In this document: positions 3,386 through 61,123 of the stretch, one piece after another | Layout of the letters: each line of letters begins with the position of its first letter | Numbering within the stretch: position 1 is the first letter of the stretch | Source: Octopus sinensis | Taxonomy: Eukaryota | Reading direction: 5' to 3' | Length of the DNA stretch: 64,000 nt | Assembly: GCF_006345805.1 (NCBI RefSeq) | Contig: NW_021833064.1 | Span: forward strand, 62,001-126,000 | The notes under the pieces: model-generated | Databases searched by the model: none | What the model saw: only the letters and a program-made list of their open reading frames with translations | What the model was told of the DNA's origin: nothing | Made by a program: the position numbers and the translations under genes

Positions 3386-4384
3386 TATATACGACTGAGT
3401 AAAATGTACCTATTCTCGTTTGGAAACGACTGAGTAAAATGTACCTACCTTCGTTTTTGGCTAACACAATTCAGCTTAAGACGATATGGCTTACGTAGGC
3501 GATTCATAGATACCTATAAATACAAAAAATGATACTTATTAAAGGGATTCTACAAATTTTTATTCCAGAAATGGTCAATTTTTAAATTCATAGTTATGAG
3601 CAAGTCCTCTTAAATATTCTATCGGACTTATATTGTCAATTTTGAATACCAGTTCAGCATTATTGTCAGCTTGCTAAGGATTTCGAAACTTAAAATGTTT
3701 GTGTATTCACCAATCCTTTCAATAGAAACAAATGATAAAGCAATTATCATTTTACCTCATAGTGCAAAATTCGGGTCATTTATGTATCTATTCCTTAACC
3801 CCAAAGATTTAATATGTCTGTTTATATGAAGATACAATATGCCGAAACGTTTCTACGCCGAATCGTCCAACACTGAATAGTCTTTCTCAAAATTTTCTAC
3901 GCTGAATCGTCTTACTCCGAATAGTTCTGCACTCAAGATCAAAATGAAGTATCTGTTCTTTCCAGCTCTGGGACGTTCTTACATGAGGCAAGATATAATG
4001 CTTTTTTTGCCTCGGTGTGCGCTGCGAAGTTTGCTTCCTCCATACCACGCGTCCTCTCAGTATTGCAGTACTTCCGGTTTGGGCGAATTTTTTTTGGGAA
4101 TTTTAATATCCTGCTTACAGTGTTATGGTGCGATTATCATGTCTCTAAAAAAGCATTTGATTTTCTTGTCTGGTGTTAGGCTGTATTGTTTGAACGATGA
4201 TAAATGAGCACTTCAAAGTTCAAACACTGATTTGCTGCAATTGTATTTTTCGAACATCTTGTATAACCAATTTATTCCTTAATTTTGCTGACAACATTAG
4301 AAGCTATCGTTAAGCTTTGTTGACTTGGATTTAGTCTGTCTTTTTGTTTACCAAGTTGGTATTTGTCAAAATTAATGTTGATTA

Positions 4385-6201: not shown

Positions 6202-6717
6202 ACAGTAAATTGATTATTTTTCCTTTGGTTTACACAAAAATTTGTGTTTTTTTTGTTTTTTGCAATAATATTTCCTTATATCTTTATTTAATAAGAAATG
6301 CTCCCTTCACAGATACTTTGAAAAAAGTACATCCCAGTAAATTATTTTTATTTTTGGATAAGTAACTTGGCTATTCTCCGAGGCGAGTACTTTTAGACAA
6401 ATTTAGGATATTTAATAATTGGAGGTTTGTAAAAAATGACGAAGAAACTAGCTTGGTGTTTCTAGAGTTTGTAATTTTGATTTTGTATACCTTATTTTTT
6501 ATTGAATAACTTTCTATTTTAATTACTGTATTTAAAATTTTAAAGTATTAACGCGAAAGAAAAGAAATAAATAATCCAATATTTATCAATCTATATAATA
6601 CTCTTTTACTGCGTCGTAATGAACTACTTCATTTGAGTAATCGTGCTACATTGATTATCGTGACATAACTGGATACAAGAGTATGAATGATGAATATAGA
6701 AAATATCGAAAAAACAA

Positions 6718-9700
6718 TGTCACAGTCCAGGGCTGCGAGACGCCAAGGCTGCGAGGTTTTGAAAATATTAATAATTTAAAAAAAAATACATTTCTGAAGT
6801 TCTTTTGTTGATCTCTTCAATAAATATCTAAAATTATTAATTTTTTCTTAATTATTTCAGAGATTGTGATTTCATGAAAACCAACATATCACCAAAATCA
6901 TTGATTTAACGTAGCGTTTTTTGATTCTATTAAAAAATTCACGGAAAATGGTTAACCAAACTAATTTTTGCGACGAAATCTATTAAAAATATTAATTAAA
7001 ATTTATAATATTAAACTTATAAGACTAAACTAACCGACAGCCCTACGGGCAGATCTTTCAGCTTGCTACTAGACCCTATGCGGCCTTCGGCCGCGGTATT
7101 TTTGATACCCTAACTTTCTAGAGAGGTATTTTTCCAAAACATTCTCTTAGACCCAAAAAAATAAAAATCAAAAAATTAAGGAAATTTAAGTTATTACAAC
7201 TTTTTTACGCGGCTTATATGAACGGTGTTTTCTATTTCTTCATCATCAAGAATGGTGATCATCTCTCCGTCAGTGTTTGTTACTTATATTTTTTTGTTGA
7301 AATTTGGTCGTACAGCGGATATTTTCTATTACCCACCCTGGTTTGCGTCCATCGTGACGTATTAAAATCTCATCACCATGTTCAATTTCGTCGTGCTTCC
7401 ATCTTCTTCTTTCTTCTTCGCTTTTTCATTTTTTCGCCAGATTTAACAATATTTGCGAGGGCAATTTTTCGTTTTTCTTCTTCACCCTCCAAATTTTTTC
7501 GAGGCGAAGTAGAATGGATTTCCGCGTCTTCATTGTGACCATCGAAACCTAATAGTGCTTCCAATTTCTTTTTTTCGTATTTTTTGGAAAGATCCACATT
7601 GAAAAATATTTCGAAGGGTCTCTGCTTTGTTGTATCGTGAGTAGAATTGTTGTAATCACGAACAACATCTTTTAGGAAATGGATGTAGCATCCAAAATTT
7701 CCTCTCGGCCCACTAGAGGATGAGATCCATCGTTTTATTGACTGATTAAATCTATCTGGATTAAGCAACAAAAAATACCGTTCGACTTGTCCCTGTATCC
7801 ATGGAGCTCGTGGCCGTCCAGAAACATGAGAAATGTTATATTTTTCGCAAAGTTGTTCCATATGAGAATTTTTGAATTCCTTTCCGTTATCGGTATGAAA
7901 AATAATCGGAGGTCCAATTATGCAAAAAATTCCATTCAGGATTCGGGAAATCTCAATTGCAGATTTGCTAATGGCACTTTCTACTACACCGAATTTAGAA
8001 AAAGAATCAATTAAAACAAGTATCTGTTAATTATATTCAAAAATAATAAACCCAGGAATAATTTTCATTTTGTGCAGAATATCGCCTTAAATCAACAAGA
8101 TCTACGATGTACCGGTCTCTCGGTGCATAAGCAATGATAGGCGTAATTATAGGTTTGGTAGCAAGCATTCGTTAGACCAGGCCTGGCCAACCCAAATCGC
8201 ATCGCGGGCCACTTTGTCCAAATGAATCCTTTCCGCGGGCCGCATATACATGTACATACTAAGGATAGATATCAAAACAACACAGATAAGATTTTATTTA
8301 GTAAAATAGCATTCAGTCCAATATACGTATCAATGAGAAATCTGTTTTTTTTTTATCTTCACTTAATTTTTTCAAATCAACTTCACAATTACTAGTTGCA
8401 CATCTTAATTGGTTTTCTAAGTTTTTATCTGTTAAAGAAGATCTATATCTACTTTTACTAAACTTTAATTTCGAAAAGAATGATTCACATACGTAAGTAG
8501 ATCCAAAGGAGCTTACAACTCTTTGTGCAAAAATTCTTAAGTTGGGATATTTTTCTGCAGTCACATATTTGTTATAAAAGTCAATTTTGGATATAGTAGG
8601 ATAAACAAGTCTTAGTTCACTGTTGCACTGTAGGTCAATTATTTCCGTCTGCAAAGTATTTGAAACAATAGAAACGTCAACATGAAATGGAGAAGAAAAT
8701 GTTTCAAACATTTTCTCATATTTTTTTAGTTCCGAGAATCGACTGTCAAATGCTGCACCAAGATTTTTTATTTCATCAGCGTACTTGAAGAAATTTTTAC
8801 AATGGCTGATTTTAAATTGATTTAGCGTTGGAAAATGTTGATCATTTCCATTTCTTATTTGACATTCAAACAATGACAATTTCATTCGAAATGCTTTGAC
8901 TTGATGGCATGCATTAGTAATCAAATTATCCTGTCCTTGTAACTCCTTGTTTAATTGATTAATTTTTTCGGTTATATCTACCAAAAAGCACAGATCTAGC
9001 ATCCATTCTTCATCATTTAATTCAGTTAATGTCATTTTCTTATGCATCATAAAACTTTTGATTTCTTCTCTCAAGTCGAAAAAACGTTTTAAACATTTTC
9101 CGCGACTCAGCCATCTGACATTGGAAAAATACACAAGATCACCATAGTGAGAATATAACTCGTTCAATAATTCTTTAAACTGGCGATGTTGAAGTGCATG
9201 AGAACGAATGAAGTTTATAGTTCTTACAACCACACTCATAACATGGTTCATAGACAACACTTGCGCGCACAAATTGTGTTGATGTATCAAGCAGTGTATT
9301 ACAAATAAATCATTTTTTATGCTTCTTGACTCCATCTCATCCATTATTAGCTTTACAACTCCTTTATTTCTTCCAATCATAGCCGGCGCCCCATCTGTTG
9401 TCAATCCAGCAAGGGTCTCTAAATTCGCTCCATTGTCGGATAAACATTTCATAACAGCTTGGAAAATATCTTCGCCCTTTGTAGTATCTTTCAAACTGAC
9501 AAGGTTAAGCATTTCTTGTTTCACTTGAAAAGATTCGGTAACTCCACGAATATATACTACAAGTTGAGACGTGTCTGATATATCCGTGCATTCGTCAAAG
9601 GCCAAAAAATAACTTTTGAAATATTTTATTTGATCACGCAAAGTCACCACAATTTCATTTGAAATGTCATTAACCCTGCGACATATGGTTTGACGTGACA

Positions 9701-10835
9701 AGCTAATGTTTGAAAACTTTTTAGTTTTATCTGGCAAAATGTCTTCACACGACAGCATCCAAACACTCTTTTACGAATTCTCCATCCGAAAATGATTTCA
9801 TTCTCTTTGAAATTATCATTGCAACAGAGTAGCTTGCTTTAACAGTATCAGAAGAAGAGTGTATCGATGAATTTAATAGTCTTTGCTGATTTCTCAATCA
9901 GATTTAAGCGAATCCAGTTTCCTTGTTTTCAATTCCTTACTAAATTTCGCGTATTCGGAATGCTTTGTTTCATAATGTCTTCTTACATTGTACTCTTTCA
10001 CCACCGATACTTTCTCCTTGCAAATTAAACATGTTGGCTTGGAATTATGCATTATAAAAAAGTAATCTTCTTCCCATGATTGCTGAATTGCCTGTTTTCT
10101 TCAAAAATTTTCCTTTTCTTCATATTGATAACAGCTACAAAAATAGATAAACTTTAAAATTTATTAAACTTATAAAATTTATCTTTATTTATTAAACTTA
10201 AGAAAAATTTATCTTGAATGTATTTATAGGTTAACTACATACAAAATTTCTCTCGCGGGCCGCACCAAACTCCATCGCGGGCCGCAAACTTGTTAAACTA
10301 AATAAATAACCTGACAATAAACGCATTTAGATACCACAGTGGCAACTTCACTACGTCTTGCACCATAAATCGACGGTGACAATAAACTATATAATTTATC
10401 TCGTCCAAAGTGGTTTAAATTGTGTTGAGCCTAATTTAAATCAGGAAATATCAAACTTCAATGTATTTGAGCTTTAATTCAGCTTCCTCGATACAAAAGA
10501 ATCGCAACTCTCGACCATTTTTAGCAATGTAGGCTGCGGAATTCTTGAAAGTGAAACTTTCGGCATATCGCTTGATTTTTGCCCTTTCCCTCCAGTCGAT
10601 GCATTCATCTAGTAGTCCGGATTCACTGAAATTCTTAATTTTTTGAATTGTTTCAAGAGTTAATTCCACTAGAACCATTTTTATAATTAATATTTAAATT
10701 AAAATTATATAATAAGTTTTATTTTTTATTATTAATAATTTTTTCCAATGAAAAGTTTTCTAAAAAAAATATTTTTTTTGCATTTTAAGCATTGACCTCG
10801 CAGCCCTGGACGGCTCGCAGCCCTGGACTGTGACA
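6718..10835 (-). mobile_element. Ginger-like DNA transposon with intron-containing retroviral-type integrase, interrupted by a hAT element
   Basis: Perfect 22-bp TIRs TGTCACAGTCCAGGGCTGCGAG (6718-6739, 10814-10835); 5-bp TSD AACAA on both sides; HHCC zinc finger and D,D35E core; introns at 10431-10456, 8024-8050 and about 7752-7778. Confidence 0.85.
8178..10290 (-). mobile_element. hAT transposon (GTF2IRD2/SPIN/Charlie-like) nested in the Ginger-like element
   Basis: TIR-like CAGGCCTGGCCAAC at 8178; GCGGGCCGC subterminal motifs at both ends; transposase from ATG 10123 (CLIC...RRHYETKH BED-type finger) continuing into ORF 8313-9758 (FDECTD, TTDGAPAM, CLIHQ, VRWLSRG, FGSTYVCESFFS). Confidence 0.9.
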
Positions 10836-11214
10836 AACAATATCAAAATTTCGAAAGAAAATGACATCAAAAGATTAAATAATAAAGAAAATTCTTTGAT
10901 TTCTTGCTTTTTAGACTTTCAGTCAAGTTTCCCAAGTTTACTGTCATAATCCCATTTAAAATTTGGTCCAATTTACATTGGGATTTTAAACTACTTGTAT
11001 TTTGATCGTAAAAATGTCACATTTATGCAGTTTTACCTTTTGTATTTAAATTATTTATTGAGCAATAGTCGTATCACAAATAATATGTGACATATTACTT
11101 TGTAAACAAGTGTTTTCTAATATTCATTTTTAACTTTATTTGGAAGTACTATCTTACCAGATTTTACGTTAAAAATTTGTATTTATTTTTTTCCTAAAAA
11201 TATATAAATACAAA

Positions 11215-11899: not shown

Positions 11900-12650
11900 G
11901 ATGCAAATAAGAAAAGGTGCAAAAATGCAATTGAGACCTTCGTGGTTCTTGTTTTCAAACCCCCTAAGCGTTAATTCCTTGACTATTTTTTTGTTATTTC
12001 CTTTTCTCGCCATTGTGTTAATAGAACCATTTTTTGTGAATTTAATTGGTAAATAAATAAAAATGTAAAAATAGGTCAAAGTTCGATAATGAAACAGGCC
12101 GTTATTAAAACGTCAACATCAACTCGATAAAATCAAAACCAATTAAAAGTATTTGGATTTCAATTTCAATAGATTCTTCGTTTAATCTTCACTTTCTTCG
12201 TAGTATCATTTTTTCAAGCATTTATAAATAGATAGAAAGGAACTTTTTTCCTCCATGGGTGTACTGTATTGCTGTAGACAAAAACAACATCCTTAATACA
12301 GGCGACGTATTTTCCAAAAAATCCATTTGAATTGTTAGTAGACGGGTTCCATCAGTTTATACTTTGATTAAAACTAATTAAAAAAATAATTATAATACAA
12401 CCTCTTCACTTGATCTTGTATCGACTGAACTTTATTCGACTTCTTATATGTTTAATTATATATTTTCCGCATAAATTTTCCATATAAGAGTTGCAAAATT
12501 TTGTCACATCATCCGTATGTAAAATTATTGATGGGCCGATCAGATAAAATACTTTTTAAAATAATTCTAAAATTTTTTTTGATGTATTAGTCATGGCAAG
12601 TTCGGCAGCGACATATTTTTAAAAAGAATCAATTAAAACTCCTTTTCACG
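11900..12650 (-). pseudogene. Degenerate Ginger-type integrase remnant
   Basis: LIGPSIILHTDD..KF.NSYMENLCGKY and VK(S/R)|intron|FNQS; shares AAAAAGAATCAATTAAAAC with the 7995-8020 region of the intact element. Confidence 0.6.
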
Positions 12651-12738: not shown

Positions 12739-15700
12739 CACATTACGAAAGATTAATATTTGTGAAATGAAGTGTTAACAAAAAATTAAAAAATCGAGGA
12801 TAATTAAAAAATTTTGATATCCTGATTCATCTAATTTACCACATTACGAAAGATTAATATTTGTGAAATGAAGTGTTAACAAAAAATTAAAAAATCGAGG
12901 ATAATTAAAAAATTTTGATATCCTAATTCATCTAATTTACCACATTACGAAAGATTAATATTCGTGAAATGAAGTGTTAACAAAAAATTAAAAAATCGAG
13001 GATAATTAAAAAATTTTGATATCGTGATTCATCTAATTTACCACATTACGAAAGATTAATATTTGTGAAATGAAGTGTTAACAAAAAATTAAAAAATCGA
13101 GGATAATTAAAAAATTTGATATCCTGATTCATCTATTTACCACATTACGAAAGATTAATATTCGTGAAATGAAGTGTTAACAAAAAATTAAAAAATCGAG
13201 GATAATTAAAAATTTTGATATCGTGATTCATCTAATTTACCACATTACGAAAGATTAATATTTGTGAAATGAAGTGTTAACAAAAAATTAAAAAATCGAG
13301 GATAATTAAAAAATTTTGATATCCTGATTTATCTAATTCACCACATTACGAAAGATTAATATTCGTGAAATGAAGTGTTAACAAAAAATTAAAAAATCGA
13401 TGATGATTAAACAATTTTGGCATCCTAAATCATCTAATTTACCACATTACGAAAGATTAATATTCGTGAAATGAAGTGTTAACAAAAAATTAAAAAATCG
13501 AGGATAATTAAAAAATTTTGATATCCTGATTTATCTAATTCACCACATTACGAAAGATTAATATTCGTGAAATGAAGTGTTAACAAAAAATTAAAAAATC
13601 GATGATGATTAAACAATTTTGGCATCCTAAATCATCTAATTTACCACATTACGAAAGATTAATATTCGTGAAATGAAGTGTTAACAAAAAATTAAAAAAT
13701 CGAGGATAATTAAAAAATTTTGATATCCTGATTCATCTATTTACCACATTACGAAAGATTAATATTCGTGAAATGAAGTGTTAACAAAAAATTAAAAATC
13801 GAGGATAATTAAAAATTTTGATATCGTGATTCATCTAATTTACCACATTACGAAAGATTAATATTCGTGAAATGAAGTGTTAACAAAAATTAAAAAATCG
13901 AGGATAATTAAAAATTTTGATATCCTGATTTATCTAATTTACCACATTACGAAAGATTAATATTCGTGAAATGAAGTGTTAACAAAAAATTAAAAAATCG
14001 AGATAATTAAAAAATTTTGATATCCTGATTCATCTAATTTACCACATTACGAAAGATTATATTCGTGAAATGAAGTGTTAACAAAAAATTAAAAAATCGA
14101 GGATAATAAAAAATTTTGATATCCTGATTCATCTAATTTACCACATTACGAAAGATTAATATTTGTGAAATGAAGTGTTAACAAAAAATTAAAAAATCGA
14201 GGATAATTAAAAAATTTTGATATCCTGATCATCTAATTACCACATTACGAAAGATTAATATTCGTGAAATGAAGTGTTAACAAAAAATTAAAAATCGAGG
14301 ATAATTAAAAAATTTGATATCCTGATTCATCTAATTTACCACATTACGAAAGATTAATATTCGTGAAATGAAGTGTTAACAAAAAATTAAAAATCGAGGA
14401 TAATTAAAAAATTTTGATATCCTGATTCATCTAATTTACCACATTACGAAAGATTAATATTTGTGAAATGAAGTGTTAACAAAAAATTAAAAAATCGAGG
14501 ATAATTAAAAAATTTGATATCCTGATTCATCTAATTACCACATTACGAAAGATTAATATTCGTGAAATGAAGTGTTAACAAAAAATTAAAAAATCGAGGA
14601 TAATTAAAAAATTTTGATATCCTGATTCATCTAATTTACCACATTACGAAAGATTAATATTCGTGAAATGAAGTGTTAACAAAAAATTAAAAATCGAGGA
14701 TAATTAAAAAATTTTGATATCCTGATTCATCTAATTTACCACATTACGAAAGATTAATATTCGTGAAATGAAGTGTTAACAAAAAATTAAAAAATCGAGG
14801 ATAATTAAAAAATTTTGATATCCTGATTCATCTAATTTACCACATTACGAAAGATTAATATTCGTGAAATGAAGTGTTAACAAAAAATTAAAAAATCGAG
14901 GATAATTAAAAAATTTTGATATCCTGATTCATCTAATTTACCACATTACGAAAGATTAATATTCGTGAAATGAAGTGTTAACAAAAAATTAAAAAATCGA
15001 GGATAATTAAAAAATTTTGATATCCTGATTCATCTAATTTACCACATTACGAAAGATTAATATTCGTGAAATGAAGTGTTAACAAAAAATTAAAAAATCG
15101 AGGATAATTAAAAAATTTTGATATCCTGATTCATCTAATTTACCACATTACGAAAGATTAATATTCGTGAAATGAAGTGTTAACAAAAATTAAAAAATCG
15201 AGGATAATTAAAAATTTTGATATCCTGATTCATCTAATTTACCACATTACGAAAGATTAATATTCGTGAAATGAAGTGTTAACAAAAATTAAAAAATCGA
15301 GGATAATTAAAAATTTTGATATCTTGATTCATCTAATTTACCACATTACGAAAGATTAATATTTGTGAAATGAAGTGTTAACAAAAATTAAAAAATCGAG
15401 GATAATTAAAAAATTTTGATATCCTGATCATCTAATTTACCACATTACGAAAGATTAATATTCGTGAAATGAAGTGTTAACAAAAAATTAAAAAATCGAG
15501 GATAATTAAAAAATTTTGATATCGTGATTCATCTAATTTACCACATTACGAAAGATTAATATTTGTGAAATGAAGTGTTAACAAAAAATTAAAAAATCGA
15601 GGATAATTAAAAAATTTTGATATCCTGATTTATCTAATTCACCACATTACGAAAGATTAATATTCGTGAAATGAAGTGTTAACAAAAAATTAAAAAATCG

Positions 15701-15852
15701 ATGATGATTAAACAATTTTGGCATCCTAAATCATCTAATTTACCACATTACGAAAGATTAATATTCGTGAAATGAAGTGTTAACAAAAAATTAAAAAATC
15801 GAGGATAATTAAAAAATTTTGATATCCTGATTTATCTAATTCACCACATTAC
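12739..15852. repeat. Tandem satellite, about 101-bp unit, about 31 copies
   Basis: Unit CCACATTACGAAAGATTAATATT(C/T)GTGAAATGAAGTGTTAACAAAAAATTAAAAAATCGAGGATAATTAAAAAATTTTGATATCCTGATTCATCTAATTTA repeated head-to-tail (starts at 12839, 12940, ...). Confidence 0.97.
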
Positions 15853-35690: not shown

Positions 35691-37234
35691 ATGTTGTCTT
35701 GTGACTCGAGTTATCTCGCTCTGATATTGGCAGCAATCAGTGTGTTATTTTACTATATAACCAAACGTCATTCTGACGGAAAAGTAGTTATAATTTGATT
35801 ATTTATAGTTAAATTATCCACCAATGGTCAAAAGGGGTCTTCCATTCTTTGGAGTCGCCTTTGAGTTTGGAAAAGACCCCGTCAAGTTCCTCCTGTCTTG
35901 CTACGAGGAGGTATGTGGTCAGAATATTCCAAGTATGGGCCTGTCGTGACCTTCACAATGATGGGCAAGCAGTTCACCTACTTGCTGGGCAGTGAAGCAG
36001 CAGAACTGTTCTTCAACAGCAAAAATGATGTCCTCAACGCGGAGGAAGCCTATTCCAAGTTGACGACACCCGTTTTCGGTCCCCGAGTAGTCTACGACAT
36101 CCCCAACCACGTATTCTGATCTCCTAAATAATAGATATTCCTCCAACAAAAAAAAATTGGAAAAAGTGGACTCAATTCTGACCGATTCCGCACATTTGTC
36201 CCCAAAATCGAGGATGAGACTGCCCAATTCTTCGCCAAATGGACAAAGACAGGCGTGGCTGACTTGTTCAAGGAATTGTCCTCTCTGATCATATTCACTG
36301 CCTCCCGTTGTCTGCTGGGGGATGAATTGAGGGAAGTCATGGACGAGTCGGTCGCTGGACTTCTCTCTGATTTGGATCAGGGGTTTAGGCCGGAGGTGTG
36401 GTTACTCCCCCAGTGGTTCCCTCTCCCTGTCAAAAAGTATGGAATATTGACGATTGTAGAGTCCGGGACCGTGCCCACCAGAAGATAAAATCTTTATTTT
36501 CTCAACAAGTTAGAAAAAGACGGGAAAGTGGTATAAGGCGAGAAGATTTGATGCAAACTTTTATTGATACTCCTTACACGGATGGGCGGAAGATGGACGA
36601 TGGCGAAGTGGTGGGATTGCTGATTGGAATGTTGTTGGGAGGGCAGCACACGTCCTCCACGACTTCTTCATGGCTGGGTCTGTACATCGCGAGGGATGAG
36701 GCACTGCAGGAGGCATTGTATGAGGAACAGATGAGTGTGCGGGGAGGGGACCCAATCACGTACGACCATTTGGAGGAAATGGATTTATTGGACAGATGTT
36801 TGAGGGAAACACTGCGACTGAGGGCTCCCCTTATTACTACTATGCGGGTGTGCAAGGTTCCTGTTCAGGTGTTGGGATATGACATCCCCGTGGACACTCA
36901 CGTGTGTATTAGTGCCAGTGTCAACCACCGCCTTAAGAATGTGTGGCACAATGTAGACAACTTTGACCCAGATCGGTTGTTTGTTGGTTTTTATGATAGT
37001 TTCCTTGAGTACGATGTGAGTAAGATTGGACGCTATTCGTATATTCCATTTGGACAGGGCAGACACCGCTGCATTGGCGAGTCCTTTGCCTACGTCCAGA
37101 TCAAGACCATTTGGGCACATCTCATTCAGAAATTTCGTTTCAGCCTTCCGGGGGGTCGTTTTCCTGATGTTGACTTGACTACGATGATTCAAGCCCCCAA
37201 ACATCCAATCATCAACTACACCCTGAGAAACTAG
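35691..37234 (+). CDS. CYP51: Sterol 14-alpha demethylase (cytochrome P450 family 51), multi-exon
   Basis: N-terminal anchor; [20 protein letters not shown]; I-helix [11 protein letters not shown]; ETLR; heme motif [10 protein letters not shown]; introns of 23-25 nt restore the frame. Confidence 0.95.
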
Positions 37235-39451: not shown

Positions 39452-41131
39452 CAGTCCGACCTCTAATTGGGGCGCACCTCCAGGGGTGGGGCACCTCTTT
39501 TTTGGGGAAAACTCTGTTTTGGGGCATTATAAATTTTTTTAACCAAATTATAAAAAATCAATTAATTTTAACATCTCTATTTGGGGCATTGATTTTTTAT
39601 TAAATAAAATTAATTATACCAATTTAAAAAATAAATATTTTAAGACACGTTTCATTTCAAATTTCTTGTGTAATGCCTTTGAATTATGAAACCAAGTTGA
39701 AGATTGCTGATCATCTTTTAAAAAAAGAACATTCTGAGAGGAGATTATCCATAATGTACAATACTAGCAAGGGAACTATTTTTCGTATAAAAAAGAATAT
39801 TCTTCCATTTATCAAAAAAGGATTTCTTTCCTCATCATTAAGTGAAAATAAAAACGGATTTGATGAAAAAGTCCTTGATATTTTTCAGCGTCTAAGGGAT
39901 CAGAATGTTCCAGTTTCTGGAACTCTTTTAAAAAAAATTTCCCTAACTGTTTCTTCGAGAATGGGTTTAAACAAGTTTAAAGCTCCAAATGGATGGTTAG
40001 AAAAATTCAAGCAGAGGCATGAATTAAAATTCCGAACATTGTCAGGCGAATCCGCATCTGCTGATCATGCGATAATTTTGAATTTTTTATCAGAATTAAA
40101 TATCAAAGTTGAACAATATGAAAAGGAGAACATTTTTAATTGTGACGAAACTTCTCTTTTTATCAAACTTACCCCACGTAAATCATTCGTGAAAACTGGT
40201 GATTCGGCACGGGGCTTTAAAAGGAGTAAAGATAAAGTTACTCTTCATCTATGCTGTAGTTACACTGGAAAAAAATTTGAACCATTAATAATCGGAAAAT
40301 ATAGAAATCCTAGATGTTTCAAAAAATTTTCTCCCGAAATTTATGGAATTTTATACTCTTCGTCCAAAAATGCGTGGATGACAAGAGACATTTTTATATC
40401 CTGGCTCAAAAAAATTAATGAAAAAATGATTATTCAAAAAAGAAAAATCTTAATGTTATTAGATAACGCTGCTTGCCACAAAATATCGACATTTAGCAAC
40501 GTTGATTTTTTATTTTTACCAAAAAATACGACACCAATACTTCAACCATTGGATGCTGGAATCATTAAAAATTTCAAGGATAATTATTTGAATTGTCTAA
40601 TTGATTTTTTATGTTTTCAAGACGACCAGGATTTGTTTATAGAGTCTTTATTTAAATTAAATTTGCGGCAAGTGGTAACAATAATCTCAGATGCTTGGAA
40701 TAATGTATCTGCGGATATTATTTATAACTGCTGGCAAAAGGTTTTTCGACAACCTCCATCAGACTCGAGTTGCATAAATGAATCATCTGAAGAAATATTT
40801 AATAATGTTATTGATGAATGTTTTGACGAAATAGAAGATAATGATCCAAATATCTATGAGAATATAAGCTGCGAACCATCAATATCACAAATTTTAAGTT
40901 TGATGGAGACAAACATCTTTGATTTGATTCCAGATTCTCTTCATGATTTTTATAAATTCAGAAAGAAAGTGTTGTTAGGAATTAAAAATAAATATAAATA
41001 TGGAGAAAAATTAACTGATTATTTTAAAAAATAATGTTCTTTTTCTTTATTTATTGAGCTTTTTGAAAAACCTCTTTTTTGGGGAAACCTCTGATTTGAG
41101 GCACTTAGTGCCCCATTTAGAGGTCGGACTG
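39452..41131 (+). mobile_element. Pogo/Tigger DNA transposon with intact 453-aa transposase (39673-41034)
   Basis: TIRs CAGTCCGACCTCTAA...GGGGC, TA on both sides; CENP-B-type HTH (GWLEKFKQRH), FNCDETSLF, LLDNAACH, QPLDAGII (D-29-D). Confidence 0.95.
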
Positions 41132-41427: not shown

Positions 41428-42253
41428 ATGTTTTCTTTTCATAATCCTAAAAATATCACTATATCTATCCGAGTCCCCAATTGCCAGTATACGGCAGAAA
41501 TAGTCGGAAAACAAGGTGCTGCGTGAATATTAACCGACAGGGTCAAAAATCAAAGCCATTTGCGAAGACACAACACATTCATTCAGAATCCCACCAGAGG
41601 AGAAGAACCAATCTTCTGCGTGACTGGGGCCTGAGGATGTCGAAAAGGCCATCAACGAAATCAAATGTGCTGCTCAACATTTTTCAAAAATCCGGTCGAC
41701 ACAACTCGTGGGAGATGAACAGGTGGTGGCGTACGTGAAGGTACCTGACCACTTGGTGGGACTGATTGTGGGGTATGGGGGAATGACGATCACACGAATA
41801 CAGCGCGAGACGGGCACATACATTGTCTCGCCCACTCGAGGGAAGGAGCCCGTTTTCAAAATCATTGGGAAGACCAGTGATGTGACCTGTGCCTATGATA
41901 AAATCAAAGCACACGTTCAGACGAGAACAGGGGTGAATGAGGGAGACATCAGAAGATGTATGTTCCTAACGATTGAGGAAATGGAGACTATTCATAGCAA
42001 GTCCATTGAGTCGGGTGACGAGGAACAGTGCAAGGATATCACCCTTAAAAACACGACTCCTCCTAGTAGGGGCTCGACTTCGCCCAGTGATCAATCTTGG
42101 GATATCACCTATGAATCATGTTTGCATAGACCATTTTACGGAATTCTATTTTGTGGGTATTATGACCCGTCGCTTTATATGTTCTCCTACTTGCAGTACT
42201 TGGAGACAATGTGCTATATCCACTTTTTCAATTCGCAACTTTGTTATGAATAA
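41428..42253 (+). CDS. MEX3: MEX3-like tandem KH-domain RNA-binding protein
   Basis: AEIVGKQ|GSKIKA (25-nt intron 41516-41540), NPTRGEEPIF.VTG, AAQHFSKIR, VPDHLVGLIVG.GG.TI.RIQRETGTYIVSPTRGKEPVF; two single-base shifts in homopolymers in KH1. Confidence 0.88.
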
Positions 42254-43562: not shown

Positions 43563-45360
43563 CAGTAGACTATCCATTTAACGAAAAAAAATTTAACGAA
43601 AATATTCATTTTACGAAAGTCAAAATATTTTTTTACGTTTTTCCTTAGATAAATTCAAAAATAAATTTTTTTTTCTTTGTATTAGTGAATATTTAAATAT
43701 ATTTAACGAATATTTAAATAACGAAAATTAAAATTTTTGATAAAATTTTAAAATATTTTTCCTCGCTATTTCTTTGTAGTAAACCATGTTGCAAGGGTGA
43801 ACAATATGAAAAAAAAAAGAAAACTTATCAATTTCAACAAAAACTGGAAGTTATTGATTTCAAGAAGATAATCCTGCTGTTACTCAAGAAAATTTGGCTC
43901 AGCGGTTTAATATACCTATTGGAGTGATCAATTCAACGTTGAACGTTGAAGAAAATGCATTGTATGGATCAAGGCGTCACAAACAAAAAAAGAATATTAC
44001 ATTTAAAAGTTGTACTGATAAGATATATGAACCACTATATGCATGGATTCAGATCAAACGTTTCTGTAATCACACCATAACTAATGAAATGGTACGCGAA
44101 ATGGCACTCAAAATTGCTCAACGATTTTATAATGAAAATTTCAAAGCATCTCACCCAGATTTCACGCTTTAAGGAAGAGTATAAAATAAAAACACTCACG
44201 ATTTCTGGAGAAGAACAATTAGTGGATCCCGTTTTGCTTTAGATTCATATGAACGCTTTGCAGCCATGTTAAAAAATATGGATCGAAAAATGTTTACAAC
44301 TGGGATGAAACTGCCTTTTTTTCAAATGTACTCCAAAAAAAACATTAGTTCTTGACTCCGAATCAAGGGCTTCAGGAAAATTTTCTAAAGAACGAATAAC
44401 ACTGTTATTATGCACAAATATGGAAGGAGATAAAGAGCATCCGTTGGTAATCGGAAAATTCAAAAATCCTCATGTTTTAAAAATATTAAATGAATAATCT
44501 TGGGATTCAATATGCAAATAGTAATAAATCTTGGATGACCAGTTTAATTTTTAAAAACTGGGTTGAACGGTTAAATTCCAAAATGAGTGTGGAAAATAGA
44601 AAGATTTTGCTTTTTTAGATAATGCGCCATGTCACTATTTTGATGGCGAATTCAGTAATATCGAATTGTATTTTCTTCCTCTAAAGACAACATCTAAGAT
44701 TCAACCAATTGATCAAGGGATTGTGCATTCATTTAAATCGTTGTATAAAAAAGGAATGACTAGAAATTTGAGTATGGGAACAAATATAGGAACATTGTCA
44801 TATACAGATGAACTTACCAAATTCAAATTAGTGAATGCTCTACCTTTAATTATTGAAACTTGGAACGAAGTCACAGTGGACACTATCAAAAATTGCTTTA
44901 ACAAGGCATTAAATAATTGGGCGAAGATAGATGAAAAAATACTTGAAGAATCCACTGACGAAAAAGGTATTAATTTAAATCACCTTACAATTAAAGATAA
45001 TAAAAGTGAAATTATGATTGAGTTTCCTGTCTGTGCACCTGTCGTCTGCGAAGAAAACGCGTATCTTGATACAATACAATGTGAGGAAGAAAATGAGCAT
45101 GAAGAAATAGATAGCACAAATGACAATCCATTGGTTATGCGATGCACTTAAATATTTGGAAAATATTGAAAAATATTTTTTGCAAGAATCTGGTGAACAT
45201 ATTCACCTAATTACAAATTTGAGAAATATATTGGCAAAAATTAAAAAGAAGGAACCTAAAATTACCGATTACATGACACATTTTTAATTAAACAATTTTT
45301 TTCGTTAAATTCATTTAACGAATGCTCAATTTTCATTTTCGTTAAATGAATAGTCTACTG
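43563..45360 (+). mobile_element. Tigger/Pogo transposon, copy A
   Basis: TIR CAGTAGACTATCCATTTAACGAA / TTCGTTAAATGAATAGTCTACTG; TA TSD; frameshifted transposase. Confidence 0.92.
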
Positions 45361-46206
45361 TATAAACTAAGGAATCCTGCATTAATCAATTTTTTCAATG
45401 CTATCGGATTCGAGTTACCCTCAGAATCCAAATGCCGAAATAATGTCAAAATTTTGGCCGAAAGACGTGTCCATGAGATAATCAGCTTGTTAATTAATGA
45501 AAAAAATTTTTTTATCGTGGATAAGACTGACGCTGGTAATGAAAAAATAGTAAATATTCTTATTGGGAAAATAACGGATCCCCAAATCAGCTATCTTATT
45601 GGTTGTGTACCATTAATTCTTCGCTTAATGCATCAATTCTATGTCAGATTGTGGATGATACGATTTGATGTGCAAATGTTGAGAGGAAAAATTTTTATTT
45701 GTTATTAACCGACGCGGCAAAGTATATGATTTTAGCCGGAAAAACACTAAAAAATTTGTATCCTAATTTATTCCACGTAACATGTATTGCACATTTAATT
45801 CACAATTGTGCATTAAGGATAAAACTAAATTATCCTGTAGTGGATAACTTAATTGCCTCTATAAAAGAACTTGTTTTGAAAAATAATAGTCGAAGGCAAC
45901 TATTTGCTGAAATAGGACTACCTCCTAAACCTATTGTTACTAGATGGGGAAGCTGGCTCCGAGCAATCAAGTACTACGCGGAAAATTTTCCCAGAGTGTT
46001 GGAAATATGCAATTCGCTAAAAGGAGAATCCATATTGATTCGGAGAGCAATGGAATCAATAAAAAATGAAGGACTTCTTAATGATTTAAAGGAGATATGG
46101 AATCAATATTCCCCACTCGTTGATGTTCTTAGTGAAATTGAGTCAAGGAACTTTTCTATCCAAAAAGCATACAATTTTCTGAGAAAACTCGATTTCAAAG
46201 AAGATA

Positions 46207-48008
46207 CAGTAGACTATCCATTTAACGAAAAAAAATTTAACGAAAATATTCATTTTACGAAAGTCAAAATATTTTTTTACGTTTTTCCTTAGATAAATTC
46301 AAAAATAAAATTTTTTTTCTTTGTATTAGTGAATATTTAAATATATTTAACGAATATTTAAATAACGAAAATTAAAATTTTTGATAAAATTTTAAAATAA
46401 TTTTTCCTCGCTATTTCTTGTAGTAAACCATGTTTGCAAGGGTGAACAATATGAAAAAAAAAGAAAACTTATCAATTCAACAAAAACTGGAAGTTATTGA
46501 TTTCAAGAAGAATAATCCTGCTGTTACTCAAGAAAATTTGGCTCAGCGGTTTAATATACCTATTGGAGTGATCAATTCAACGTTGAAGAAAATGCAATTG
46601 TATGGATCAAGGCGTCACAAACAAAAAAAGAATATTACATTTAAAAGTTGTACTGATAAGATATATGAACCACTATATGCATGGATTCAGATCAAACGTT
46701 TCTGTAATCACACCATAACTAATGAAATGGTACGCGAAATGGCACTCAAAATTGCTCAACGATTTTATAATGAAAATTTCAAAGCATCTCACCCATGGAT
46801 TTCACGCTTTAAGGAAGAGTATAAAATAAAAACACTCACGATTTCTGGAGAAGAACAATTAGTGGATCCCGTTTTGCTTATAGATTCATATGAACGCTTT
46901 GCAGCCATGTTAAAAAATATGGATCGAAAAATGTTTACAACTGGGATGAAACTGCCTTTTTTTCAAATGTACTCCAAAAAAAACATTAGTTCTTGACTCC
47001 GAATCAAGGGCTTCAGGAAAATTTTCTAAAGAACGAATAACACTGTTATTATGCACAAATATGGAAGGAGATAAAGAGCATCCGTTGGTAATCGGAAAAT
47101 TCAAAAATCCTCATGGTTTTAAAAATATTAATATGAATAATCTTGGGATTCAATATGCAAATAGTAATAAATCTTGGATGACCAGTTTAATTTTTAAAAA
47201 CTGGGTTGAACGGTTAAATTCCAAAATGAGTGTGGAAAATAGAAAGATTTTGCTTCTTTTAGATAATGCGCCAGTTCACTATTTTGATGGCGAATTCAGT
47301 AATATCGAATTGTATTTTCTTCCTCTAAAGACAACATCTAAGATTCAACCAATTGATCAAGGGATTGTGCATTCATTTAATCGTTGTATAAAAAAGGAAT
47401 GACTAGAAATTTGAGTATGGGAACAAATATAGGAACATTGTCATATACAGATGAACTTACCAAATTCAAATTAGTGAATGCTCTACCTTTAATTATTGAA
47501 ACTTGGAACGAAGTCACAGTGGACACTATCAAAAATTGCTTTAACACAAGGCATTAAATAATTGGGCGAAGATAGATGAAAAAATACTTGAAGAATCCAC
47601 TGACGAAAAAGGTATTAAATTTAAATCACCTTACAATTAAAGATAATAAAAGTGAAATTATGATTGAGTTTCCTGTCTGTGCACCTGTCGTCTGCGAAGA
47701 AAACGCGTATCTTGATACAATACAATGTGAGGAAGAAAATGAGCATGAAGAAATAGATAGCACAAATGACAATCCCATTGGTTATGCAGATGCACTTAAA
47801 TATTTGGAAAATATTGAAAAATATTTTTTGCAAGAATCTGGTGAACATATTCACCTAATTACAAATTTGAGAAATATATTGGCAAAAATTAAAAAGAAGG
47901 AACCTAAAATTACCGATTACATGACACATTTTTAATTAAACAATTTTTTTCGTTAAATTCATTTAACGAATGCTCAATTTTCATTTTCGTTAAATGAATA
48001 GTCTACTG
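46207..48008 (+). mobile_element. Tigger/Pogo transposon, copy B (near-identical to A)
   Basis: Same TIRs with TA TSD; LLLDNAPVH, QPIDQGIV motifs; differs from A mostly by indels. Confidence 0.92.
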
Positions 48009-50998: not shown

Positions 50999-51867
50999 TT
51001 TAAAATAAATGAATATATCGAAAAGAGATTGAACACGAATGAAATTTTAAAAATTGTTAACGGAGATGGAATTTTTTTGCCTTTGGAAAAGTTTCAACTA
51101 CTCCAGTGTCAGGCCACTACCTGTTCAGTAGAGCGCTCGTTTTCAGTTCTTCATAAAATTTTGGCCAAAGACCGAAATTTTAAAACTGAAAACGTCAAAT
51201 ATTATATGATTCTATATAATTCATGTTTCTAGAAAAAATTATTGCATAAAAATTATCTGAAAAACTTTTTTTAGGTCTACATTCTGGTCAACTTTCATCT
51301 TTTTTGAATCAATTTTGTTGACTTTATGGAGGTCAATTTTTGCTTTTTTTAGGTCAACTTTGTGGTTGCCCTAGTAATAAATAATTATTGCTTAAATGTT
51401 CACAAGCTATCGGGATGTTTTATTTCATATTCACGACATGTGGATTGTGTTGATTTCTATCTTAGCCATTTCTAAAAATGTTTATTTTTTGTGATTATTT
51501 ATTTCATTACCCAAGATTGTCTGGTTAAAAGAACAAAAGGGAAAAACTGACAACTAACCAAGTGATGCCAGACTTGTAGAAAAAGGGCATCCAATATCGC
51601 TCTTCTCATAATTAATTTATCCGGTTGAATGATTATTTTTTGTATTTTAGATAGGTGATTTTGAAGAGTCATATTAGTTCCCATTCCAACAATAAAGAAT
51701 TTATTAAAATCAAGGGTCTATGTTTTTTATTTGCTTCCATATATATGCTTAATTTTGTTTTTAAGGCAGAAGGAATCTGGAGCATTATTCTTAAACTCCG
51801 TTCTATTTTCTGTTTGTAGAATCTCTCAAAAGCCGATTTAAAAACAAAGTTCTTCAAATAATAAATA

Positions 51868-53264: not shown

Positions 53265-54410
53265 GTGTGCAAAAAATTTTTTGGGGGGGGGGAAATTTTA
53301 CAATTAAAAAACCAATGGTTAAAAAAATAGGTCTAGTCAATTGGATATTCTCTTCTGTTTTTATTTTGTATCCAAAATTTGTATATTCGATCAAGATCCA
53401 CTGTATTCAAAGATTTCAGATAGATCTTATAGATCTGAAAAGTTTTTCTACTATAAATAAAAATTTTAAATGGATTTTAACGGTCATTGACGTATATAGC
53501 AGGTTGGTTTTTTAACAATTTTTATAGATTTGCATTTGCGAGGCCGCTCTACACTAAGTCCTCAAATGAAGTTTGTGAAAACCTCAGATCATTATTTTTC
53601 TTAAATGGTCCGTGTCAATTTCTTAAGTCCGATAATGGGACTGAATTCAAGAATCGTGAAATGACCAATCTATGTGAGGAATTCAATATCAAACGAATTC
53701 ACGGAAGGCCAAACAATCCCCGCTCACAAGGGATTGTCGAACGCTTCAACCAGTCAATTACAAGAAAAATGGCAAAAATGATCGACAATGATAATAAAAA
53801 GTGGCTGGAAAAATTAGAAAATGCAGTGTACAGTTATAACATTTCTGTCCACTCATCTTCTAATGAGAGCCCTTTTGAAAGATACCGGAGAATAAGTGGA
53901 ATAAATACAATATTTTATGGTTGTAATTATAAAATTATTCCTTAGATAATTCAAGTAATGATTTGTTGAGTCCTGATCAAGTCGATGATGCAAACAATTG
54001 TCCGAGTCCAATTGAAAATTCATGTAATTTGAATTTCTATATGTAGATGATTGCAATTATTCGTTTACAAGTCCGAAAAGATTTCAGTTCGAAATCAACC
54101 CCATTGATCCTAATTCTAATTATTACAAAGCGATGAACAGAAAAATGAATGTTCACAATAGTAAGTATGAATTTAGTGTTGGTGATAAAGTATGCATAAA
54201 AATTAATGTTTAGGTTTGAGTTAAAAAAGACTTTGGAACAAATCCTTCGTTGCGACTGGATAAGTTTGAATCTCCATATTATCCATCTGCAGAAATTATC
54301 AGTATTTTATCAAACAATCGCGTTGAGGTAGTTTAAACATTTAAATTTAATAGATAAAAAATTCGATGAGCGAAATTTCGATTGTGCCAATGTCCAGACT
54401 TAAAAAATAA
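53265..54410 (+). mobile_element. Second Ginger-type integrase family, truncated, with a 25-nt intron
   Basis: QRFQIDLIDL...WILTVIDVYSR|FAFA (intron 53503-53527), SDNGTEF, QGIVERFNQSI, YSYN..VHS; no TIRs resolved. Confidence 0.75.
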
Positions 54411-54446
54411 TTAACAAGTTATTATTCTTTGAAGTTTTGACCTTCT

Positions 54447-58539: not shown

Positions 58540-59207
58540 GAACAATTTATTTTCGAGTTTCCAACAACGGAGTGGAATTCAAAAAACAACTGATGGATCA
58601 AATATGCAAAAAAAATAAAATCAAAAATATTTATAGAAAACCAAATCATTCCCAGTCACAAGTTTATAATTTTAACTAAATGAAGGTGTGATTGACCGCT
58701 TTAAACAGACATTGAAACAAAGTATGGCAAAACTGATGAAAAAATAAAAAACGGAAACTATTTTTAGACAAAGTAACTTATTCGTATAATACGACACATC
58801 ACTCGGTGATCAATGAAATCTTCGAAAAGTTTAGTAATATTTCTGGAATTAACACTGTGATTCATGAAATAATAAATTTTTATCTCATTTATTATTTAGA
58901 TGAAATTAATTAGGCATCGTTTGTCCAAGATAAACTGAATGATAAATTTACGATGTATTTATTTTTAGAAACGACTTATAAAATTTTCAATTTACTCGTC
59001 CAACATGAGTTCATCTTATTTTAAAAGAATGCATAAAAAGATAGGGGTAGAAAGGTAAAAATATGATTTTAGAATAGAGAATAAGGTATAGTTAAATAGG
59101 AACAGTTTGGGTTGAATCGAAATATTATGGAAAGAATTTTCATTGAAACAACATATAGATTTGATGAAGAAAAAAGAAAAGTAAAAAATGTAATGCCTGA
59201 TAACAAA
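58540..59207 (+). pseudogene. Degenerate Ginger-type integrase remnant related to 53265-54410
   Basis: GVIDRFKQTLKQSMAKL; YSYNTTH; downstream sequence parallels 53880-54250. Confidence 0.5.
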
Positions 59208-59209
59208 TA

Positions 59210-61123
59210 CAGTTTACCCTCTATTGCTCGCCAATTCTATTGCTCGCCATTTCTATAACTCGCCACTTTTTTAGAAAAAATGCCATTTTTACTAAGGAAA
59301 TTTCATTGCTCGCCAAATTCTCTTACTCGCCACGTTTTAGTATTAAAAAATTAAAATTTATTATTAAAAAAATAATTTTTTCAAATATTTATACCGCGTG
59401 TTTTTTTTGTAACATGAGGAAGTGCTCAAGATTATCTTATGATCAAAAAAGAGAAATTATAAATTATCTTATTGATAATTCTTCTCTAAGTCTAAGGCGT
59501 GTTTCAGAATTTTTTCGTCGCGTTTCAAAAAATCAATTTCGAGACGTGCAATTAACGATCTTAAATTGAACAAACAGAAGATTCTTGGAATTAATCCAAT
59601 TTATGGGAGAAGTTCTCGTTTTTCGAAACTTAGATATTCAGCAATTGATTCTGAAATCATTGCCTGGATAGATTACATGGAATCTATTGGAGTTTGCCCT
59701 CAATGATGAATATTTTGTCGAAAGCAACTGAAATTGCTGCGTTAAACGGTCTCTTCTTCGAATTTAAAGCCAGTAAAGGATGGCTTGAAAAGTTCAAAAA
59801 AAGGCACAATGTAAAACTAAGAATTTTTCATGGTGAATTGGGATCGCGGAGACTTCAAAGACCAAATCGAAGACTTTAAAAAAATTATCTCTTCTAAAAT
59901 AAATGAATATGGTTCAGAAAATGTTTATAATGCCGACGAAACCGGCGTATTTTACAAGACCATTCCATCAAAAAGTGTCTGCAGGAAACGCCGACCAGAC
60001 AAAAATTACTTAAAGATAGGTTTAACATTTTTAGCCAATTTTCAGATTTTCATTAATGCTTTGCGCAAATATGACTGGATCCGATAAAAGAACCCCTTTG
60101 ATGATCGGGCAGTTTAAGAAACCAAGGTGTTTTAAAACTTGAACGTTGATGAATATCTACAATACCGGAATTCTTCAAAGGCTTGGATGAACATGGAAAT
60201 ATTTAACGAATGGTTGTATAATTGGAACAAGACTCTCAAACAAAAACAAAAAAAGATACTTTTGGTTGTAGACCATTGTCCTTCGCATAGAACAACAATC
60301 GAATTAAGTATGATAGAAGTTTTATATTTACCAAAAAACACGACTACTGTGCTTCAACCGATGGATCACGGAATCATTAGATCATTCAAATCTCATTTCA
60401 ACAAATTTAAATTTAAACATATAATTGAACAAATAAACTACGGTGACGCAACTATTGAATGCTATAAAAAATTAACCCTGAAAGATGCAGTCTTATTTTC
60501 TTATCTAGCCTGGAAAGATGTGTCAGTGGATACAATATCAAAATGTTTTCAGCACGCCAAATGGGAAAACAGAATGAAGAACCTATTATGGGAGACCATA
60601 AAATAAAAATTTCGAACAAATTATAGAAAATTAATGATCACAGATCCCATAAAAAGGAGTTTATAGACTTTACGTACTCTGAAAATGACGAACTTCATGA
60701 ATTTGTTCAAAACAATAACTATGAAAATAACGATGAAAATGCAATTTTTAGACAGTTCAATTACTGAAGATTGGAAAGAAACAACTGTATTACACATCGA
60801 GATGCGATAAAATGTATTTCGGACCTCAAAATATTTTTCACATGACGATAATTTTGATGTGAATATGCTAGAAAGTTTATTAAAAATGCAAAAAAATTAG
60901 AGAAAAGATCATACAAAAAAACTATAAATGATTACTTTACTTAAAATTTTGGTTTTTTAAATAAATGTTTCGGCTATTTATTTAAATGTTTAGATAGTTA
61001 AAAATTATAGAAATTTTTTGTTGATAGAAAATAGGATATTAATTATTTCTCTTACTCGCCAAATTCTCTTAGTCGCCAATTTTGGCTTGGTCCCAAAAAT
61101 GGCGAGCAATAGAGGGAAGACTG
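59210..61123 (+). mobile_element. Tigger/Pogo transposon, frameshifted
   Basis: TIRs CAGT(T)TACCCTCTATTGCTCGCCA / TGGCGAGCAATAGAGGGAAGACTG; TA flanks; YNADETG, VDHCPSH, QPMDHGII. Confidence 0.9.

Follow-up and report, generated by a model that had tools for sequence, protein, structure and literature searches.

How does a DNA transposon come to carry introns of less than thirty nucleotides (nt), and have such introns been brought in by the element or gained in the genome in which it resides? This question is raised by a 4118-bp element in a 64-kb stretch of DNA from contig NW_021833064.1 (assembly GCF_006345805.1, positions 62,001 to 126,000), which is filed as Octopus sinensis; the whole stretch is called the window below, and all coordinates refer to it. 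The element encodes an integrase-type transposase, the gene of which is broken up by three very short GT..AG segments and by a nested hAT element. With a probability of roughly 80%, we consider it to be a dead cut-and-paste DNA transposon of the Ginger2/TDD type, residing in an animal genome with tiny introns, and carrying introns that are derived. Its ends and flanks are as follows:

6718-10835, minus strand: whole element, 4118 bp, interpreted as a dead DNA transposon of the Ginger2/TDD type that encloses a nested hAT element
6713-6717, no strand: left copy of the target-site duplication (TSD), AACAA, from flank comparison
6718-6757, plus strand: left terminal inverted repeat (TIR), perfect over 6718-6739 (TGTCACAGTCCAGGGCTGCGAG) and imperfect to about 6757
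10795-10835, minus strand: right TIR, perfect over 10814-10835
10836-10840, no strand: right copy of the TSD, AACAA, from flank comparison

The perfect 22-bp TIRs with TGT...ACA termini described in the first-pass annotation of this locus were recovered in a window-wide repeat search (6718-6739 versus 10814-10835, chance expectation 0), and the sequence TGTCACAGTCCAGGGCTGCGAG has no further match within the 64 kb. With one gap allowed, the repeats can be followed over about 41 nt (93% identity). In full, the termini read TGTCA...TGACA, which corresponds to the pattern TGTNR...CA. The TSD proposed earlier could be confirmed as well: it is AT-rich and exactly 5 bp long (AACAA), and at a length of 4 or 6 bp the flanks mismatch. 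Two copies of a GGCTGCGAG motif are present in the left TIR, and the right TIR contains a 15-nt direct repeat in two identical copies (CTCGCAGCCCTGGAC, 10797-10811 and 10814-10828); the latter are likely to represent transposase-binding sites. A paralogous empty site, i.e. the two flanks joined, was found neither in the window nor in ten related loci.

Long direct repeats, as expected of long terminal repeats (LTRs), were not detected in a repeat search of the element. Analysis of open reading frames (ORFs) and domain searches gave no match to reverse transcriptase (RT), RNase H, gag or polymerase between its bounds, and there is no room for them either: the sole coding content consists of the integrase gene and the nested hAT remnant, two transposase genes that together leave only about 600 nt of the element. 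The earlier view that LTRs, RT and gag are lacking is thus upheld. A perfect GC hairpin (GCGGCC-TTCG-GGCCGC) was observed at 7078-7100, 3' of the integrase stop, inside the element and in AT-rich surroundings; it has no other match in the window.

The following features could be identified in the interior of the element:

7194-10678, minus strand: integrase-type transposase gene, from an ATG at 10678 to a stop at 7196-7194; broken
10314-10424, minus strand: H2C2 zinc finger, H-x3-H-x28-C-x2-C (Pfam Integrase_H2C2, 2.7e-6, above the curated cut-off)
7640-8120, minus strand: D,D35E catalytic core of the rve type (matched over profile positions 5-102 of 102 by Pfam rve, 8.9e-13, and also by rve_3)
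10431-10456, minus strand: predicted intron 1, 26 nt, GT..AG, three codons 5' of the first His of the zinc finger, with an in-frame TGA
8024-8051, minus strand: predicted intron 2, 28 nt, GT..AG, between ...NENYSW and ILVLIDSF...
7752-7778, minus strand: predicted intron 3, 27 nt, GT..AG, phase 2, in the Arg codon after the catalytic Glu
8313-10123, minus strand: hAT transposase gene remnant (Pfam Dimer_Tnp_hAT 1.8e-7, zf-C2H2_12 1.3e-10, weak DUF4371)

The ORF that starts at the ATG at 10678 ends at a stop after 74 codons, and past a 26-nt GT..AG segment the frame continues as AQHNLNHFGRD...CVYCQ, which holds the zinc finger. Beyond the hAT element the integrase resumes with MLATKPIITPII...IVDLVD...NENYSW; it then proceeds past a 28-nt GT..AG segment as ILVLIDSF...HTDNGKEF...QGQVER and past a 27-nt segment as FNQSIKRW.... 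The pieces on the two sides of the hAT element were analysed apart and were never joined. In an alignment with the integrase of prototype foamy virus (PFV), for which a structure has been solved (E = 4e-9), the two Asp residues and the Glu pair with the catalytic triad, 35 residues separate the second Asp from the Glu, and no gaps occur over the junctions of introns 2 and 3; the spliced D,D35E core predicted in the first-pass annotation is therefore well founded. With these segments retained, rve_3 is lost from the downstream piece and the rve match is truncated, whereas the spliced piece matches both Pfam domains.

The three candidate introns were scored against a profile built from 16 continuous relatives. 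Removal of intron 1 converts two partial matches (24.0 and 37.1 bits) into one colinear match of 76.8 bits, removal of intron 2 converts partial matches of 55.8 and 219 bits into one of 294.3 bits, and subsequent removal of intron 3 raises this to 309.3 bits. An unbiased scan, in which each GT..AG segment of 18-45 nt was removed in turn (31-39 candidates per round), returned as the unique best segments 10456-10431 (of 31), 8051-8024 (of 39) and 7778-7752, and no further candidate improved the score. A further intron, 3' of the zinc finger and 5' of the core, was considered and rejected, as this region contains no GT..AG segment of workable length and the relatives are continuous there. Lengths of 26, 27 and 27 nt had been given in the first-pass annotation, of which the first and third stand and the second has to be changed to 28 nt (8051-8024, minus strand). 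Intron 3 does lie where it had been placed, right behind the catalytic Glu (directly after Glu-Arg), and is indeed in frame and concealed within an ORF (7382-7861), where its retention would be read as YFLLLNPD(R).

The strongest argument for real introns is that independent copies carry them at the same sites. The closest relative in the databases searched, a locus referred to here as L001, has a 27-nt GT..AG segment at the site of intron 2 and a 26-nt one at the site of intron 3. Within the window, the site of intron 3 is occupied in a decayed copy (12178-12639) by a GT..AG segment of 28 nt, in the same phase, so that the position and phase of this intron are common to all three copies. Since the lengths at this site (27, 26 and 28 nt) differ modulo 3, only removal of the segment leaves all three genes in frame. 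The possibility that the segments are chance GT..AG indels in a decaying pseudogene has to be considered, as this copy is demonstrably dead (a stop, frameshifts and a nested insertion) and the introns are read from sequence. Such indels would, however, hardly recur with differing sequence and length at the same sites of independent copies (28 and 27 nt at the second site; 27, 26 and 28 nt at the third), with removal restoring the frame each time. In addition, all three segments have the modal intron length of the host, each is the unique best of its 31-39 candidates, and at the true frameshift sites, where the relatives are continuous, there is no intron-sized extra DNA. We therefore regard chance indels as highly improbable. 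On the comparison of copies and relatives, the three segments behave as genuine spliceosomal introns of the host's size class, and their earlier designation as host-type micro-introns is apt: host genes in the window have introns of 23-31 nt (see below), and other copies use the second and third of these sites.

The window copy itself is dead. Its integrase gene has suffered one nested insertion, one in-frame stop and three frameshifts, the stop and the frameshifts all lying outside the catalytic core; C-terminal frame changes were counted by tblastn with three relatives and by direct reading of the frames. The core is open once introns 2 and 3 are removed. An earlier description of the gene as open apart from the hAT insertion is thus correct for the core, but not for the gene as a whole, which has the stop and the three frameshifts besides. 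The hAT gene has three frameshifts of its own and encodes a Spin-doc-type zinc finger. The nested element of which it is part measures about 2.1 kb, reaches slightly past the gene on both sides, has weak terminal repeats and is flanked by 8-mers that match at 6 of 8 positions (an imperfect 8-bp duplication). The hAT gene (8313-10123) sits in the same orientation inside the Ginger2-type gene (7194-10678, minus strand), as a disruptive nested insertion.

To which superfamily does the element belong? The Ginger2/TDD superfamily includes TDD-4 and TDD-5 of Dictyostelium and the Ginger2 families of cnidarians, insects, molluscs, nematodes and the lancelet (Bao, Kapitonov and Jurka 2010, PMC2836005), and its TSD is 4 or 5 bp (PMC10045372). 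According to the definitions used for all superfamilies compared here (PMC2836005, PMC10045372, PMC6839031), its hallmarks are TGTNR termini, a 4- or 5-bp TSD at AT-rich targets, and a transposase with an H2C2 finger and a DDE core, without GPY/F or YPYY motif. The window element shares with this superfamily the single integrase-like transposase gene with H2C2 finger and DDE core, the absence of both motifs, the TIRs with TGTNR termini, the AT-rich target and, once the nested hAT element is subtracted, a size of about 2 kb (2.27 kb for a related unit at a locus referred to as L007); the 5-bp TSD is shared with TDD-4 and TDD-5. A GP[YF] motif was found in no frame of the C-terminal region, and a [YF]P[YF][YF] motif was not found upstream of the zinc finger; each of the two is found in 0 of 35 stand-alone relatives. 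No OTU- or Ulp1-type protease domain is encoded, the gene ending after an SH3-like tail. The Ginger-type assignment made earlier can thus be refined, by hallmarks, to Ginger2/TDD.

Differences with published Ginger2 elements are a TSD of 5 bp and TIRs of 22-41 nt (64 nt in L001), compared to 4 bp and 45-180 nt in metazoan Ginger2, which we consider minor departures, and the interruption of the gene by three introns of 26-28 nt. In the literature searched, there is no earlier report of Dicyemida, the probable host phylum (see below), as a host of Ginger2/TDD elements.

The other superfamilies with a related integrase fit less well. Ginger1, like GIN1 and GIN2, has an integrase-like transposase, and Ginger1 also shares the TGTNR termini and, in some families of other animals, the presence of introns (one to four; PMC2836005), but it differs by a 4-bp CCGG or CCGT TSD, by YPYY and GPY/F motifs and by a C-terminal OTU or Ulp1 domain, none of which occurs in the window element. 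The remaining groups have a homologous DDE core, but GingerRoot/IS3EU elements have a 6-bp TSD, mostly TA..TA termini and TIRs of 100-150 nt; Polinton/Maverick elements have a 6-bp TSD, AG..TC ends and genes for a polymerase, a capsid and many other proteins (PMC6839031); and Gypsy and BEL LTR retrotransposons have LTRs, gag, RT and RNase H. Ginger1, GingerRoot/IS3EU, Polinton and an LTR element were therefore rejected on TSD, termini, TIRs, motifs and gene content.

The names given to the closest relatives raise another possibility, namely that the gene is a domesticated, KRBA2-like cellular integrase, or else a leftover integrase from an LTR retrotransposon or Polinton. Named close relatives are annotated by NCBI only as 'KRAB-A domain-containing protein 2-like' (from Octopus sinensis and Mytilus edulis; E = 1e-73 and 6e-29), with the first retroelement pol protein following at 1e-8. 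The mammalian genes KRBA2 and SCAND3 (ZBED9) have their origin in transposases of Ginger2 (Llorens et al. 2012, PMC3575427), and SCAND3 consists of a Ginger2 integrase joined to part of a hAT transposase (PMC3575427). The window locus resembles KRBA2 in that its nearest named relatives bear this name, and SCAND3 in containing the same two ingredients, with hAT in the same orientation inside a Ginger2-type gene; moreover, introns are typical of host genes. It differs from both genes, however, in having TIRs and a TSD and in lacking a KRAB or SCAN domain, and its hAT part is a nested insertion and not a fusion. That some database matches are part of giant gene models that also contain RT and RNase H might seem to point to an LTR origin. 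This sign was rejected, since these are chimeric models with two or three integrase stretches each, by which their summed scores are inflated. An exhaustive search returned 4132 cluster representatives at E <= 1e-30; among its best single-stretch matches, stand-alone proteins of 350-480 residues predominate. As the gene lies, decayed, between TIRs with a TSD, as relatives have the same ends, as no LTRs, RT, gag or polymerase occur within the element bounds, and as a 5-bp TSD with TG..CA ends does not agree with the 6 bp and AG..TC of Polintons (PMC6839031), we deem a domesticated gene or a retroelement remnant most unlikely, and retain the classification as a Ginger2/TDD-type transposon.

Several relatives provide further evidence on ends and gene structure. 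L001, the core protein of which is 61% identical to that of the window element (the best amino acid identity in the databases searched), lies on contig VCDQ01000492.1 (1.29 Mb, GCA_006345805.1), filed as Octopus sinensis. It has 64-nt TIRs starting with TGTCACGGTCCAG, flanked by TAATA and TGATA, and an additional 27-nt intron in the linker region; it is dead, and contains a nested element (TIRs of 198 nt) besides other defects. The RefSeq gene model at this locus, LOC115227152, translates the segment at the site of intron 2 into nine additional residues and goes astray at the segment at the site of intron 3. The same contig also holds an intronless member of the family, and a second 'KRBA2-like' protein, XP_029653938.1, is annotated on it (the contig of L001 and L010). 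Another locus (L003) has ends TGT.../...GTGACA and an exact 5-bp TSD, ATAAT. In L007, a 2.27-kb unit (63-2334) with TGTCACCGTCC termini contains a single intact, intronless ORF of 413 residues, its flanks being without a matching 5-bp duplication; two terminal repeats lie back to back at its left end as a 59-nt palindrome (63-121). The terminal TGTCACNGTCC is common to the window element, L001 and L007. No convincing inverted ends were found, at the seeds used, for the intact relatives L004, L005/L006 and L010. A scan of a metagenome collection for the conserved terminal pattern gave 120 single matches, of which 0 had an integrase and the median GC content was 53%, and these were dismissed as chance matches in bacterial DNA. 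With a best database identity of 61%, the element plausibly represents an undescribed family, as had been suggested, i.e. a new family of a known superfamily, without close database relative.

Are the introns ancestral, or were they gained? The first-pass annotation had stated that they have shrunk to the extreme size class of the host. Such an account, in which ancestral introns shrank during long residence, could draw on the introns of Ginger1 families in other animals (one to four, PMC2836005) and on the fact that intron positions are shared by copies with only 39-61% identical proteins, so that the introns are old relative to these copies. However, the 16 continuous relatives, which stem from other sources, all align colinearly over the junctions, and in every one of them the three sites are free of insertions. 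When the core was analysed by neighbour-joining, the window element and L001 came out as sisters (73% support) within an intronless clade (67%), i.e. the intron-bearing pair is nested among intronless relatives. Finally, L001 has its extra linker intron, and introns 2 and 3 are missing from a further Ginger2-like lineage of the window, which has micro-introns of its own at other positions.

The latter lineage is represented by a second, distant Ginger2-like integrase at 53345-54412 (plus strand), which is decayed, with its upstream part missing or disrupted, and which groups with the Mytilus KRBA2-like protein in the neighbour-joining tree. Introns 2 and 3 are not present here, the sequence ERFNQSI being unbroken, and a 25-nt intron is found at 53503-53527, seven codons 3' of the site of intron 2; its removal raises the match from 29.8 to 193.7 bits. 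Candidates for further introns in this copy are 53920-53945, 54024-54046 and 54328-54353. Further decayed integrase fragments of the same superfamily were seen at 12178-12639 (minus), 51736-51822 (minus) and 58560-58676 (plus), giving five Ginger2-like loci in the 64-kb window. The first of these fragments is adjoined, and truncated in its upstream part, by a satellite array at 12739-15852 (31 copies of a 101-nt unit, 95% identity).

As relatives from outside are intronless, the intron-bearing pair is nested among them and a second lineage has its own intron positions, gain is favoured over shrinkage: the introns were probably acquired within the host lineage, at host size, and we consider shrinkage of ancestral introns unlikely. 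Repeated gain of host-sized introns in this genome lineage is the simplest account. Long residence of the family in its host, which had been proposed along with shrinkage, is itself supported, since diverged copies share intron positions. Control of transposition at the level of splicing, also suggested in the first-pass annotation, is best kept as a hypothesis. We further propose, as an evenly balanced suggestion, that the transposase genes of this genome document recent intron gain, that at least two separate Ginger2-type lineages have gained introns of modal length (about 27 nt) at different positions, that one intron-bearing clade, with three or four introns of which one lies directly after the catalytic Glu, has thereby come to depend wholly on an unusual spliceosome for its enzyme, and that truncated, DNA-binding products may act as regulators.

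The host to which these introns would conform can be judged from other genes in the window, which is eukaryotic by its content and AT-rich (about 25-47% GC):

35691-37234, plus strand: CYP51 (lanosterol 14-alpha-demethylase) gene, four introns of 25, 23, 24 and 23 nt
17462-16196, minus strand: GH18 chitinase-like gene, introns of 31, 27 and 24 nt, possibly one more in-frame intron
3890-4093, plus strand: U2 spliceosomal small nuclear RNA gene, full length, 66.5 bits
502-574, minus strand: tRNA-Gly(UCC) gene

After splicing, the CYP51 gene forms an ORF of 482 codons that matches p450 positions 3-455 of 462 and aligns with animal CYP51 proteins over 99-100% of the length (best identity about 54-55%), and the spliced GH18 gene matches the whole family profile. 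A KH-domain gene has an intron of 25 nt. Host introns in the window thus measure 23-31 nt (CYP51, GH18 and KH-domain genes), compared to 26, 28 and 27 nt in the element. At about 41590-41640 (plus strand), two exon frames of the KH-domain gene can be joined only by a 16-nt GT..AG segment, and otherwise a frameshift has to be assumed. A ciliate origin with reassigned stop codons was rejected, as the CYP51 and GH18 genes are of animal type and follow the standard code. Given introns of about 25 nt in this genome, its U2 may merit a study of its own.

No animals other than dicyemids and myxobolid myxozoans are known to have introns of less than 30 nt (PMC13644364); in Dicyema sp., the median intron is 27 bp (PMC6543705), and Dicyema japonicum has been sequenced from its host Octopus sinensis (PMC6736024). 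Several repeats are shared between the window and the L001 contig at 66-81% identity. The tiny introns, the filing of the L001 contig as Octopus sinensis and the shared repeats together make a dicyemid origin the best reading. The window is thus most likely of dicyemid origin, and contig VCDQ01000492.1 is probably likewise dicyemid (Dicyema) DNA inside the octopus assembly.

Other mobile elements are present in the window. An uninterrupted, intronless ORF of 453 codons at 39673-41034 (plus strand) encodes a pogo/Tigger-type transposase with DDE_1 and HTH_Tnp_Tc5 domains, and transposon fragments were seen of Tc1/mariner type (DDE_3, 2157-2639), pogo-like type (44666-45151, 46430-46996 and 60139-60606) and hAT type (45699-46292).

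Several points weigh against the reading of the element as a dead Ginger2/TDD-type transposon with derived introns. The intron junctions are drawn from sequence, and intron 1 is seen in one copy. The exact family has one copy in the window, and none above 61% amino acid identity in the databases searched. Protein databases are built from continuous ORFs, by which intronless relatives may be over-represented, and the support values in the tree are moderate (73% and 67%). The placement in the superfamily makes use of hallmarks and of the 'KRBA2-like' names of relatives, and the TIRs, at 22-41 nt, fall short of the 45-297 nt reported for Ginger2. The identity of the host as a dicyemid is one that we infer.

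For an active copy, the following course of events may be proposed by analogy with the family. The single gene would encode a DDE transposase similar to retroviral integrases, composed of an N-terminal region, an H2C2 finger, a D,D35E core of RNase-H fold and a small SH3-like tail. This enzyme would bind the repeated motifs of 9-15 nt inside the inverted ends, cleave at the conserved TGT...ACA termini (CA-3'), and transfer the strands with a 5-bp stagger, the repair of which would leave a 5-bp duplication of an AT-rich target. Before the message could encode the enzyme, the host spliceosome would have to remove the introns of 26, 28 and 27 nt, which the clade appears to have acquired while resident in a lineage with tiny introns. 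Retention of intron 1 or 2 is predicted to lead to a stop within a few codons, and retention of intron 3 to add nine residues immediately behind the catalytic Glu-Arg, where in retroviral integrases the next helix begins. The window copy would afterwards have been struck by hAT and have decayed further (one stop and three frameshifts). In the P element of Drosophila, transposase is made only once introns are removed, intron retention yields a truncated protein, and tissue-specific splicing has been demonstrated; this is an analogy only, as its transposase family is unrelated to the integrase in the window.

The introns of dicyemids are thought to be old introns that have shrunk in place, according to Ogino et al. 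2010 as cited in PMC6543705. If the present interpretation is correct, new introns would also arise, already minimal, in such a genome, and introns in transposons could be dated from the divergence of the copies. An intron that is in frame remains concealed, and the gene is split by ORF-based annotation, so that such elements are easily missed or mis-modelled. The presence of the sister element on a contig filed as Octopus sinensis suggests that parasite DNA is included in the reference assembly of the host. The element itself is otherwise an ordinary, dead DNA transposon, and its main interest would lie in the lineage-specific gain of minimal introns.

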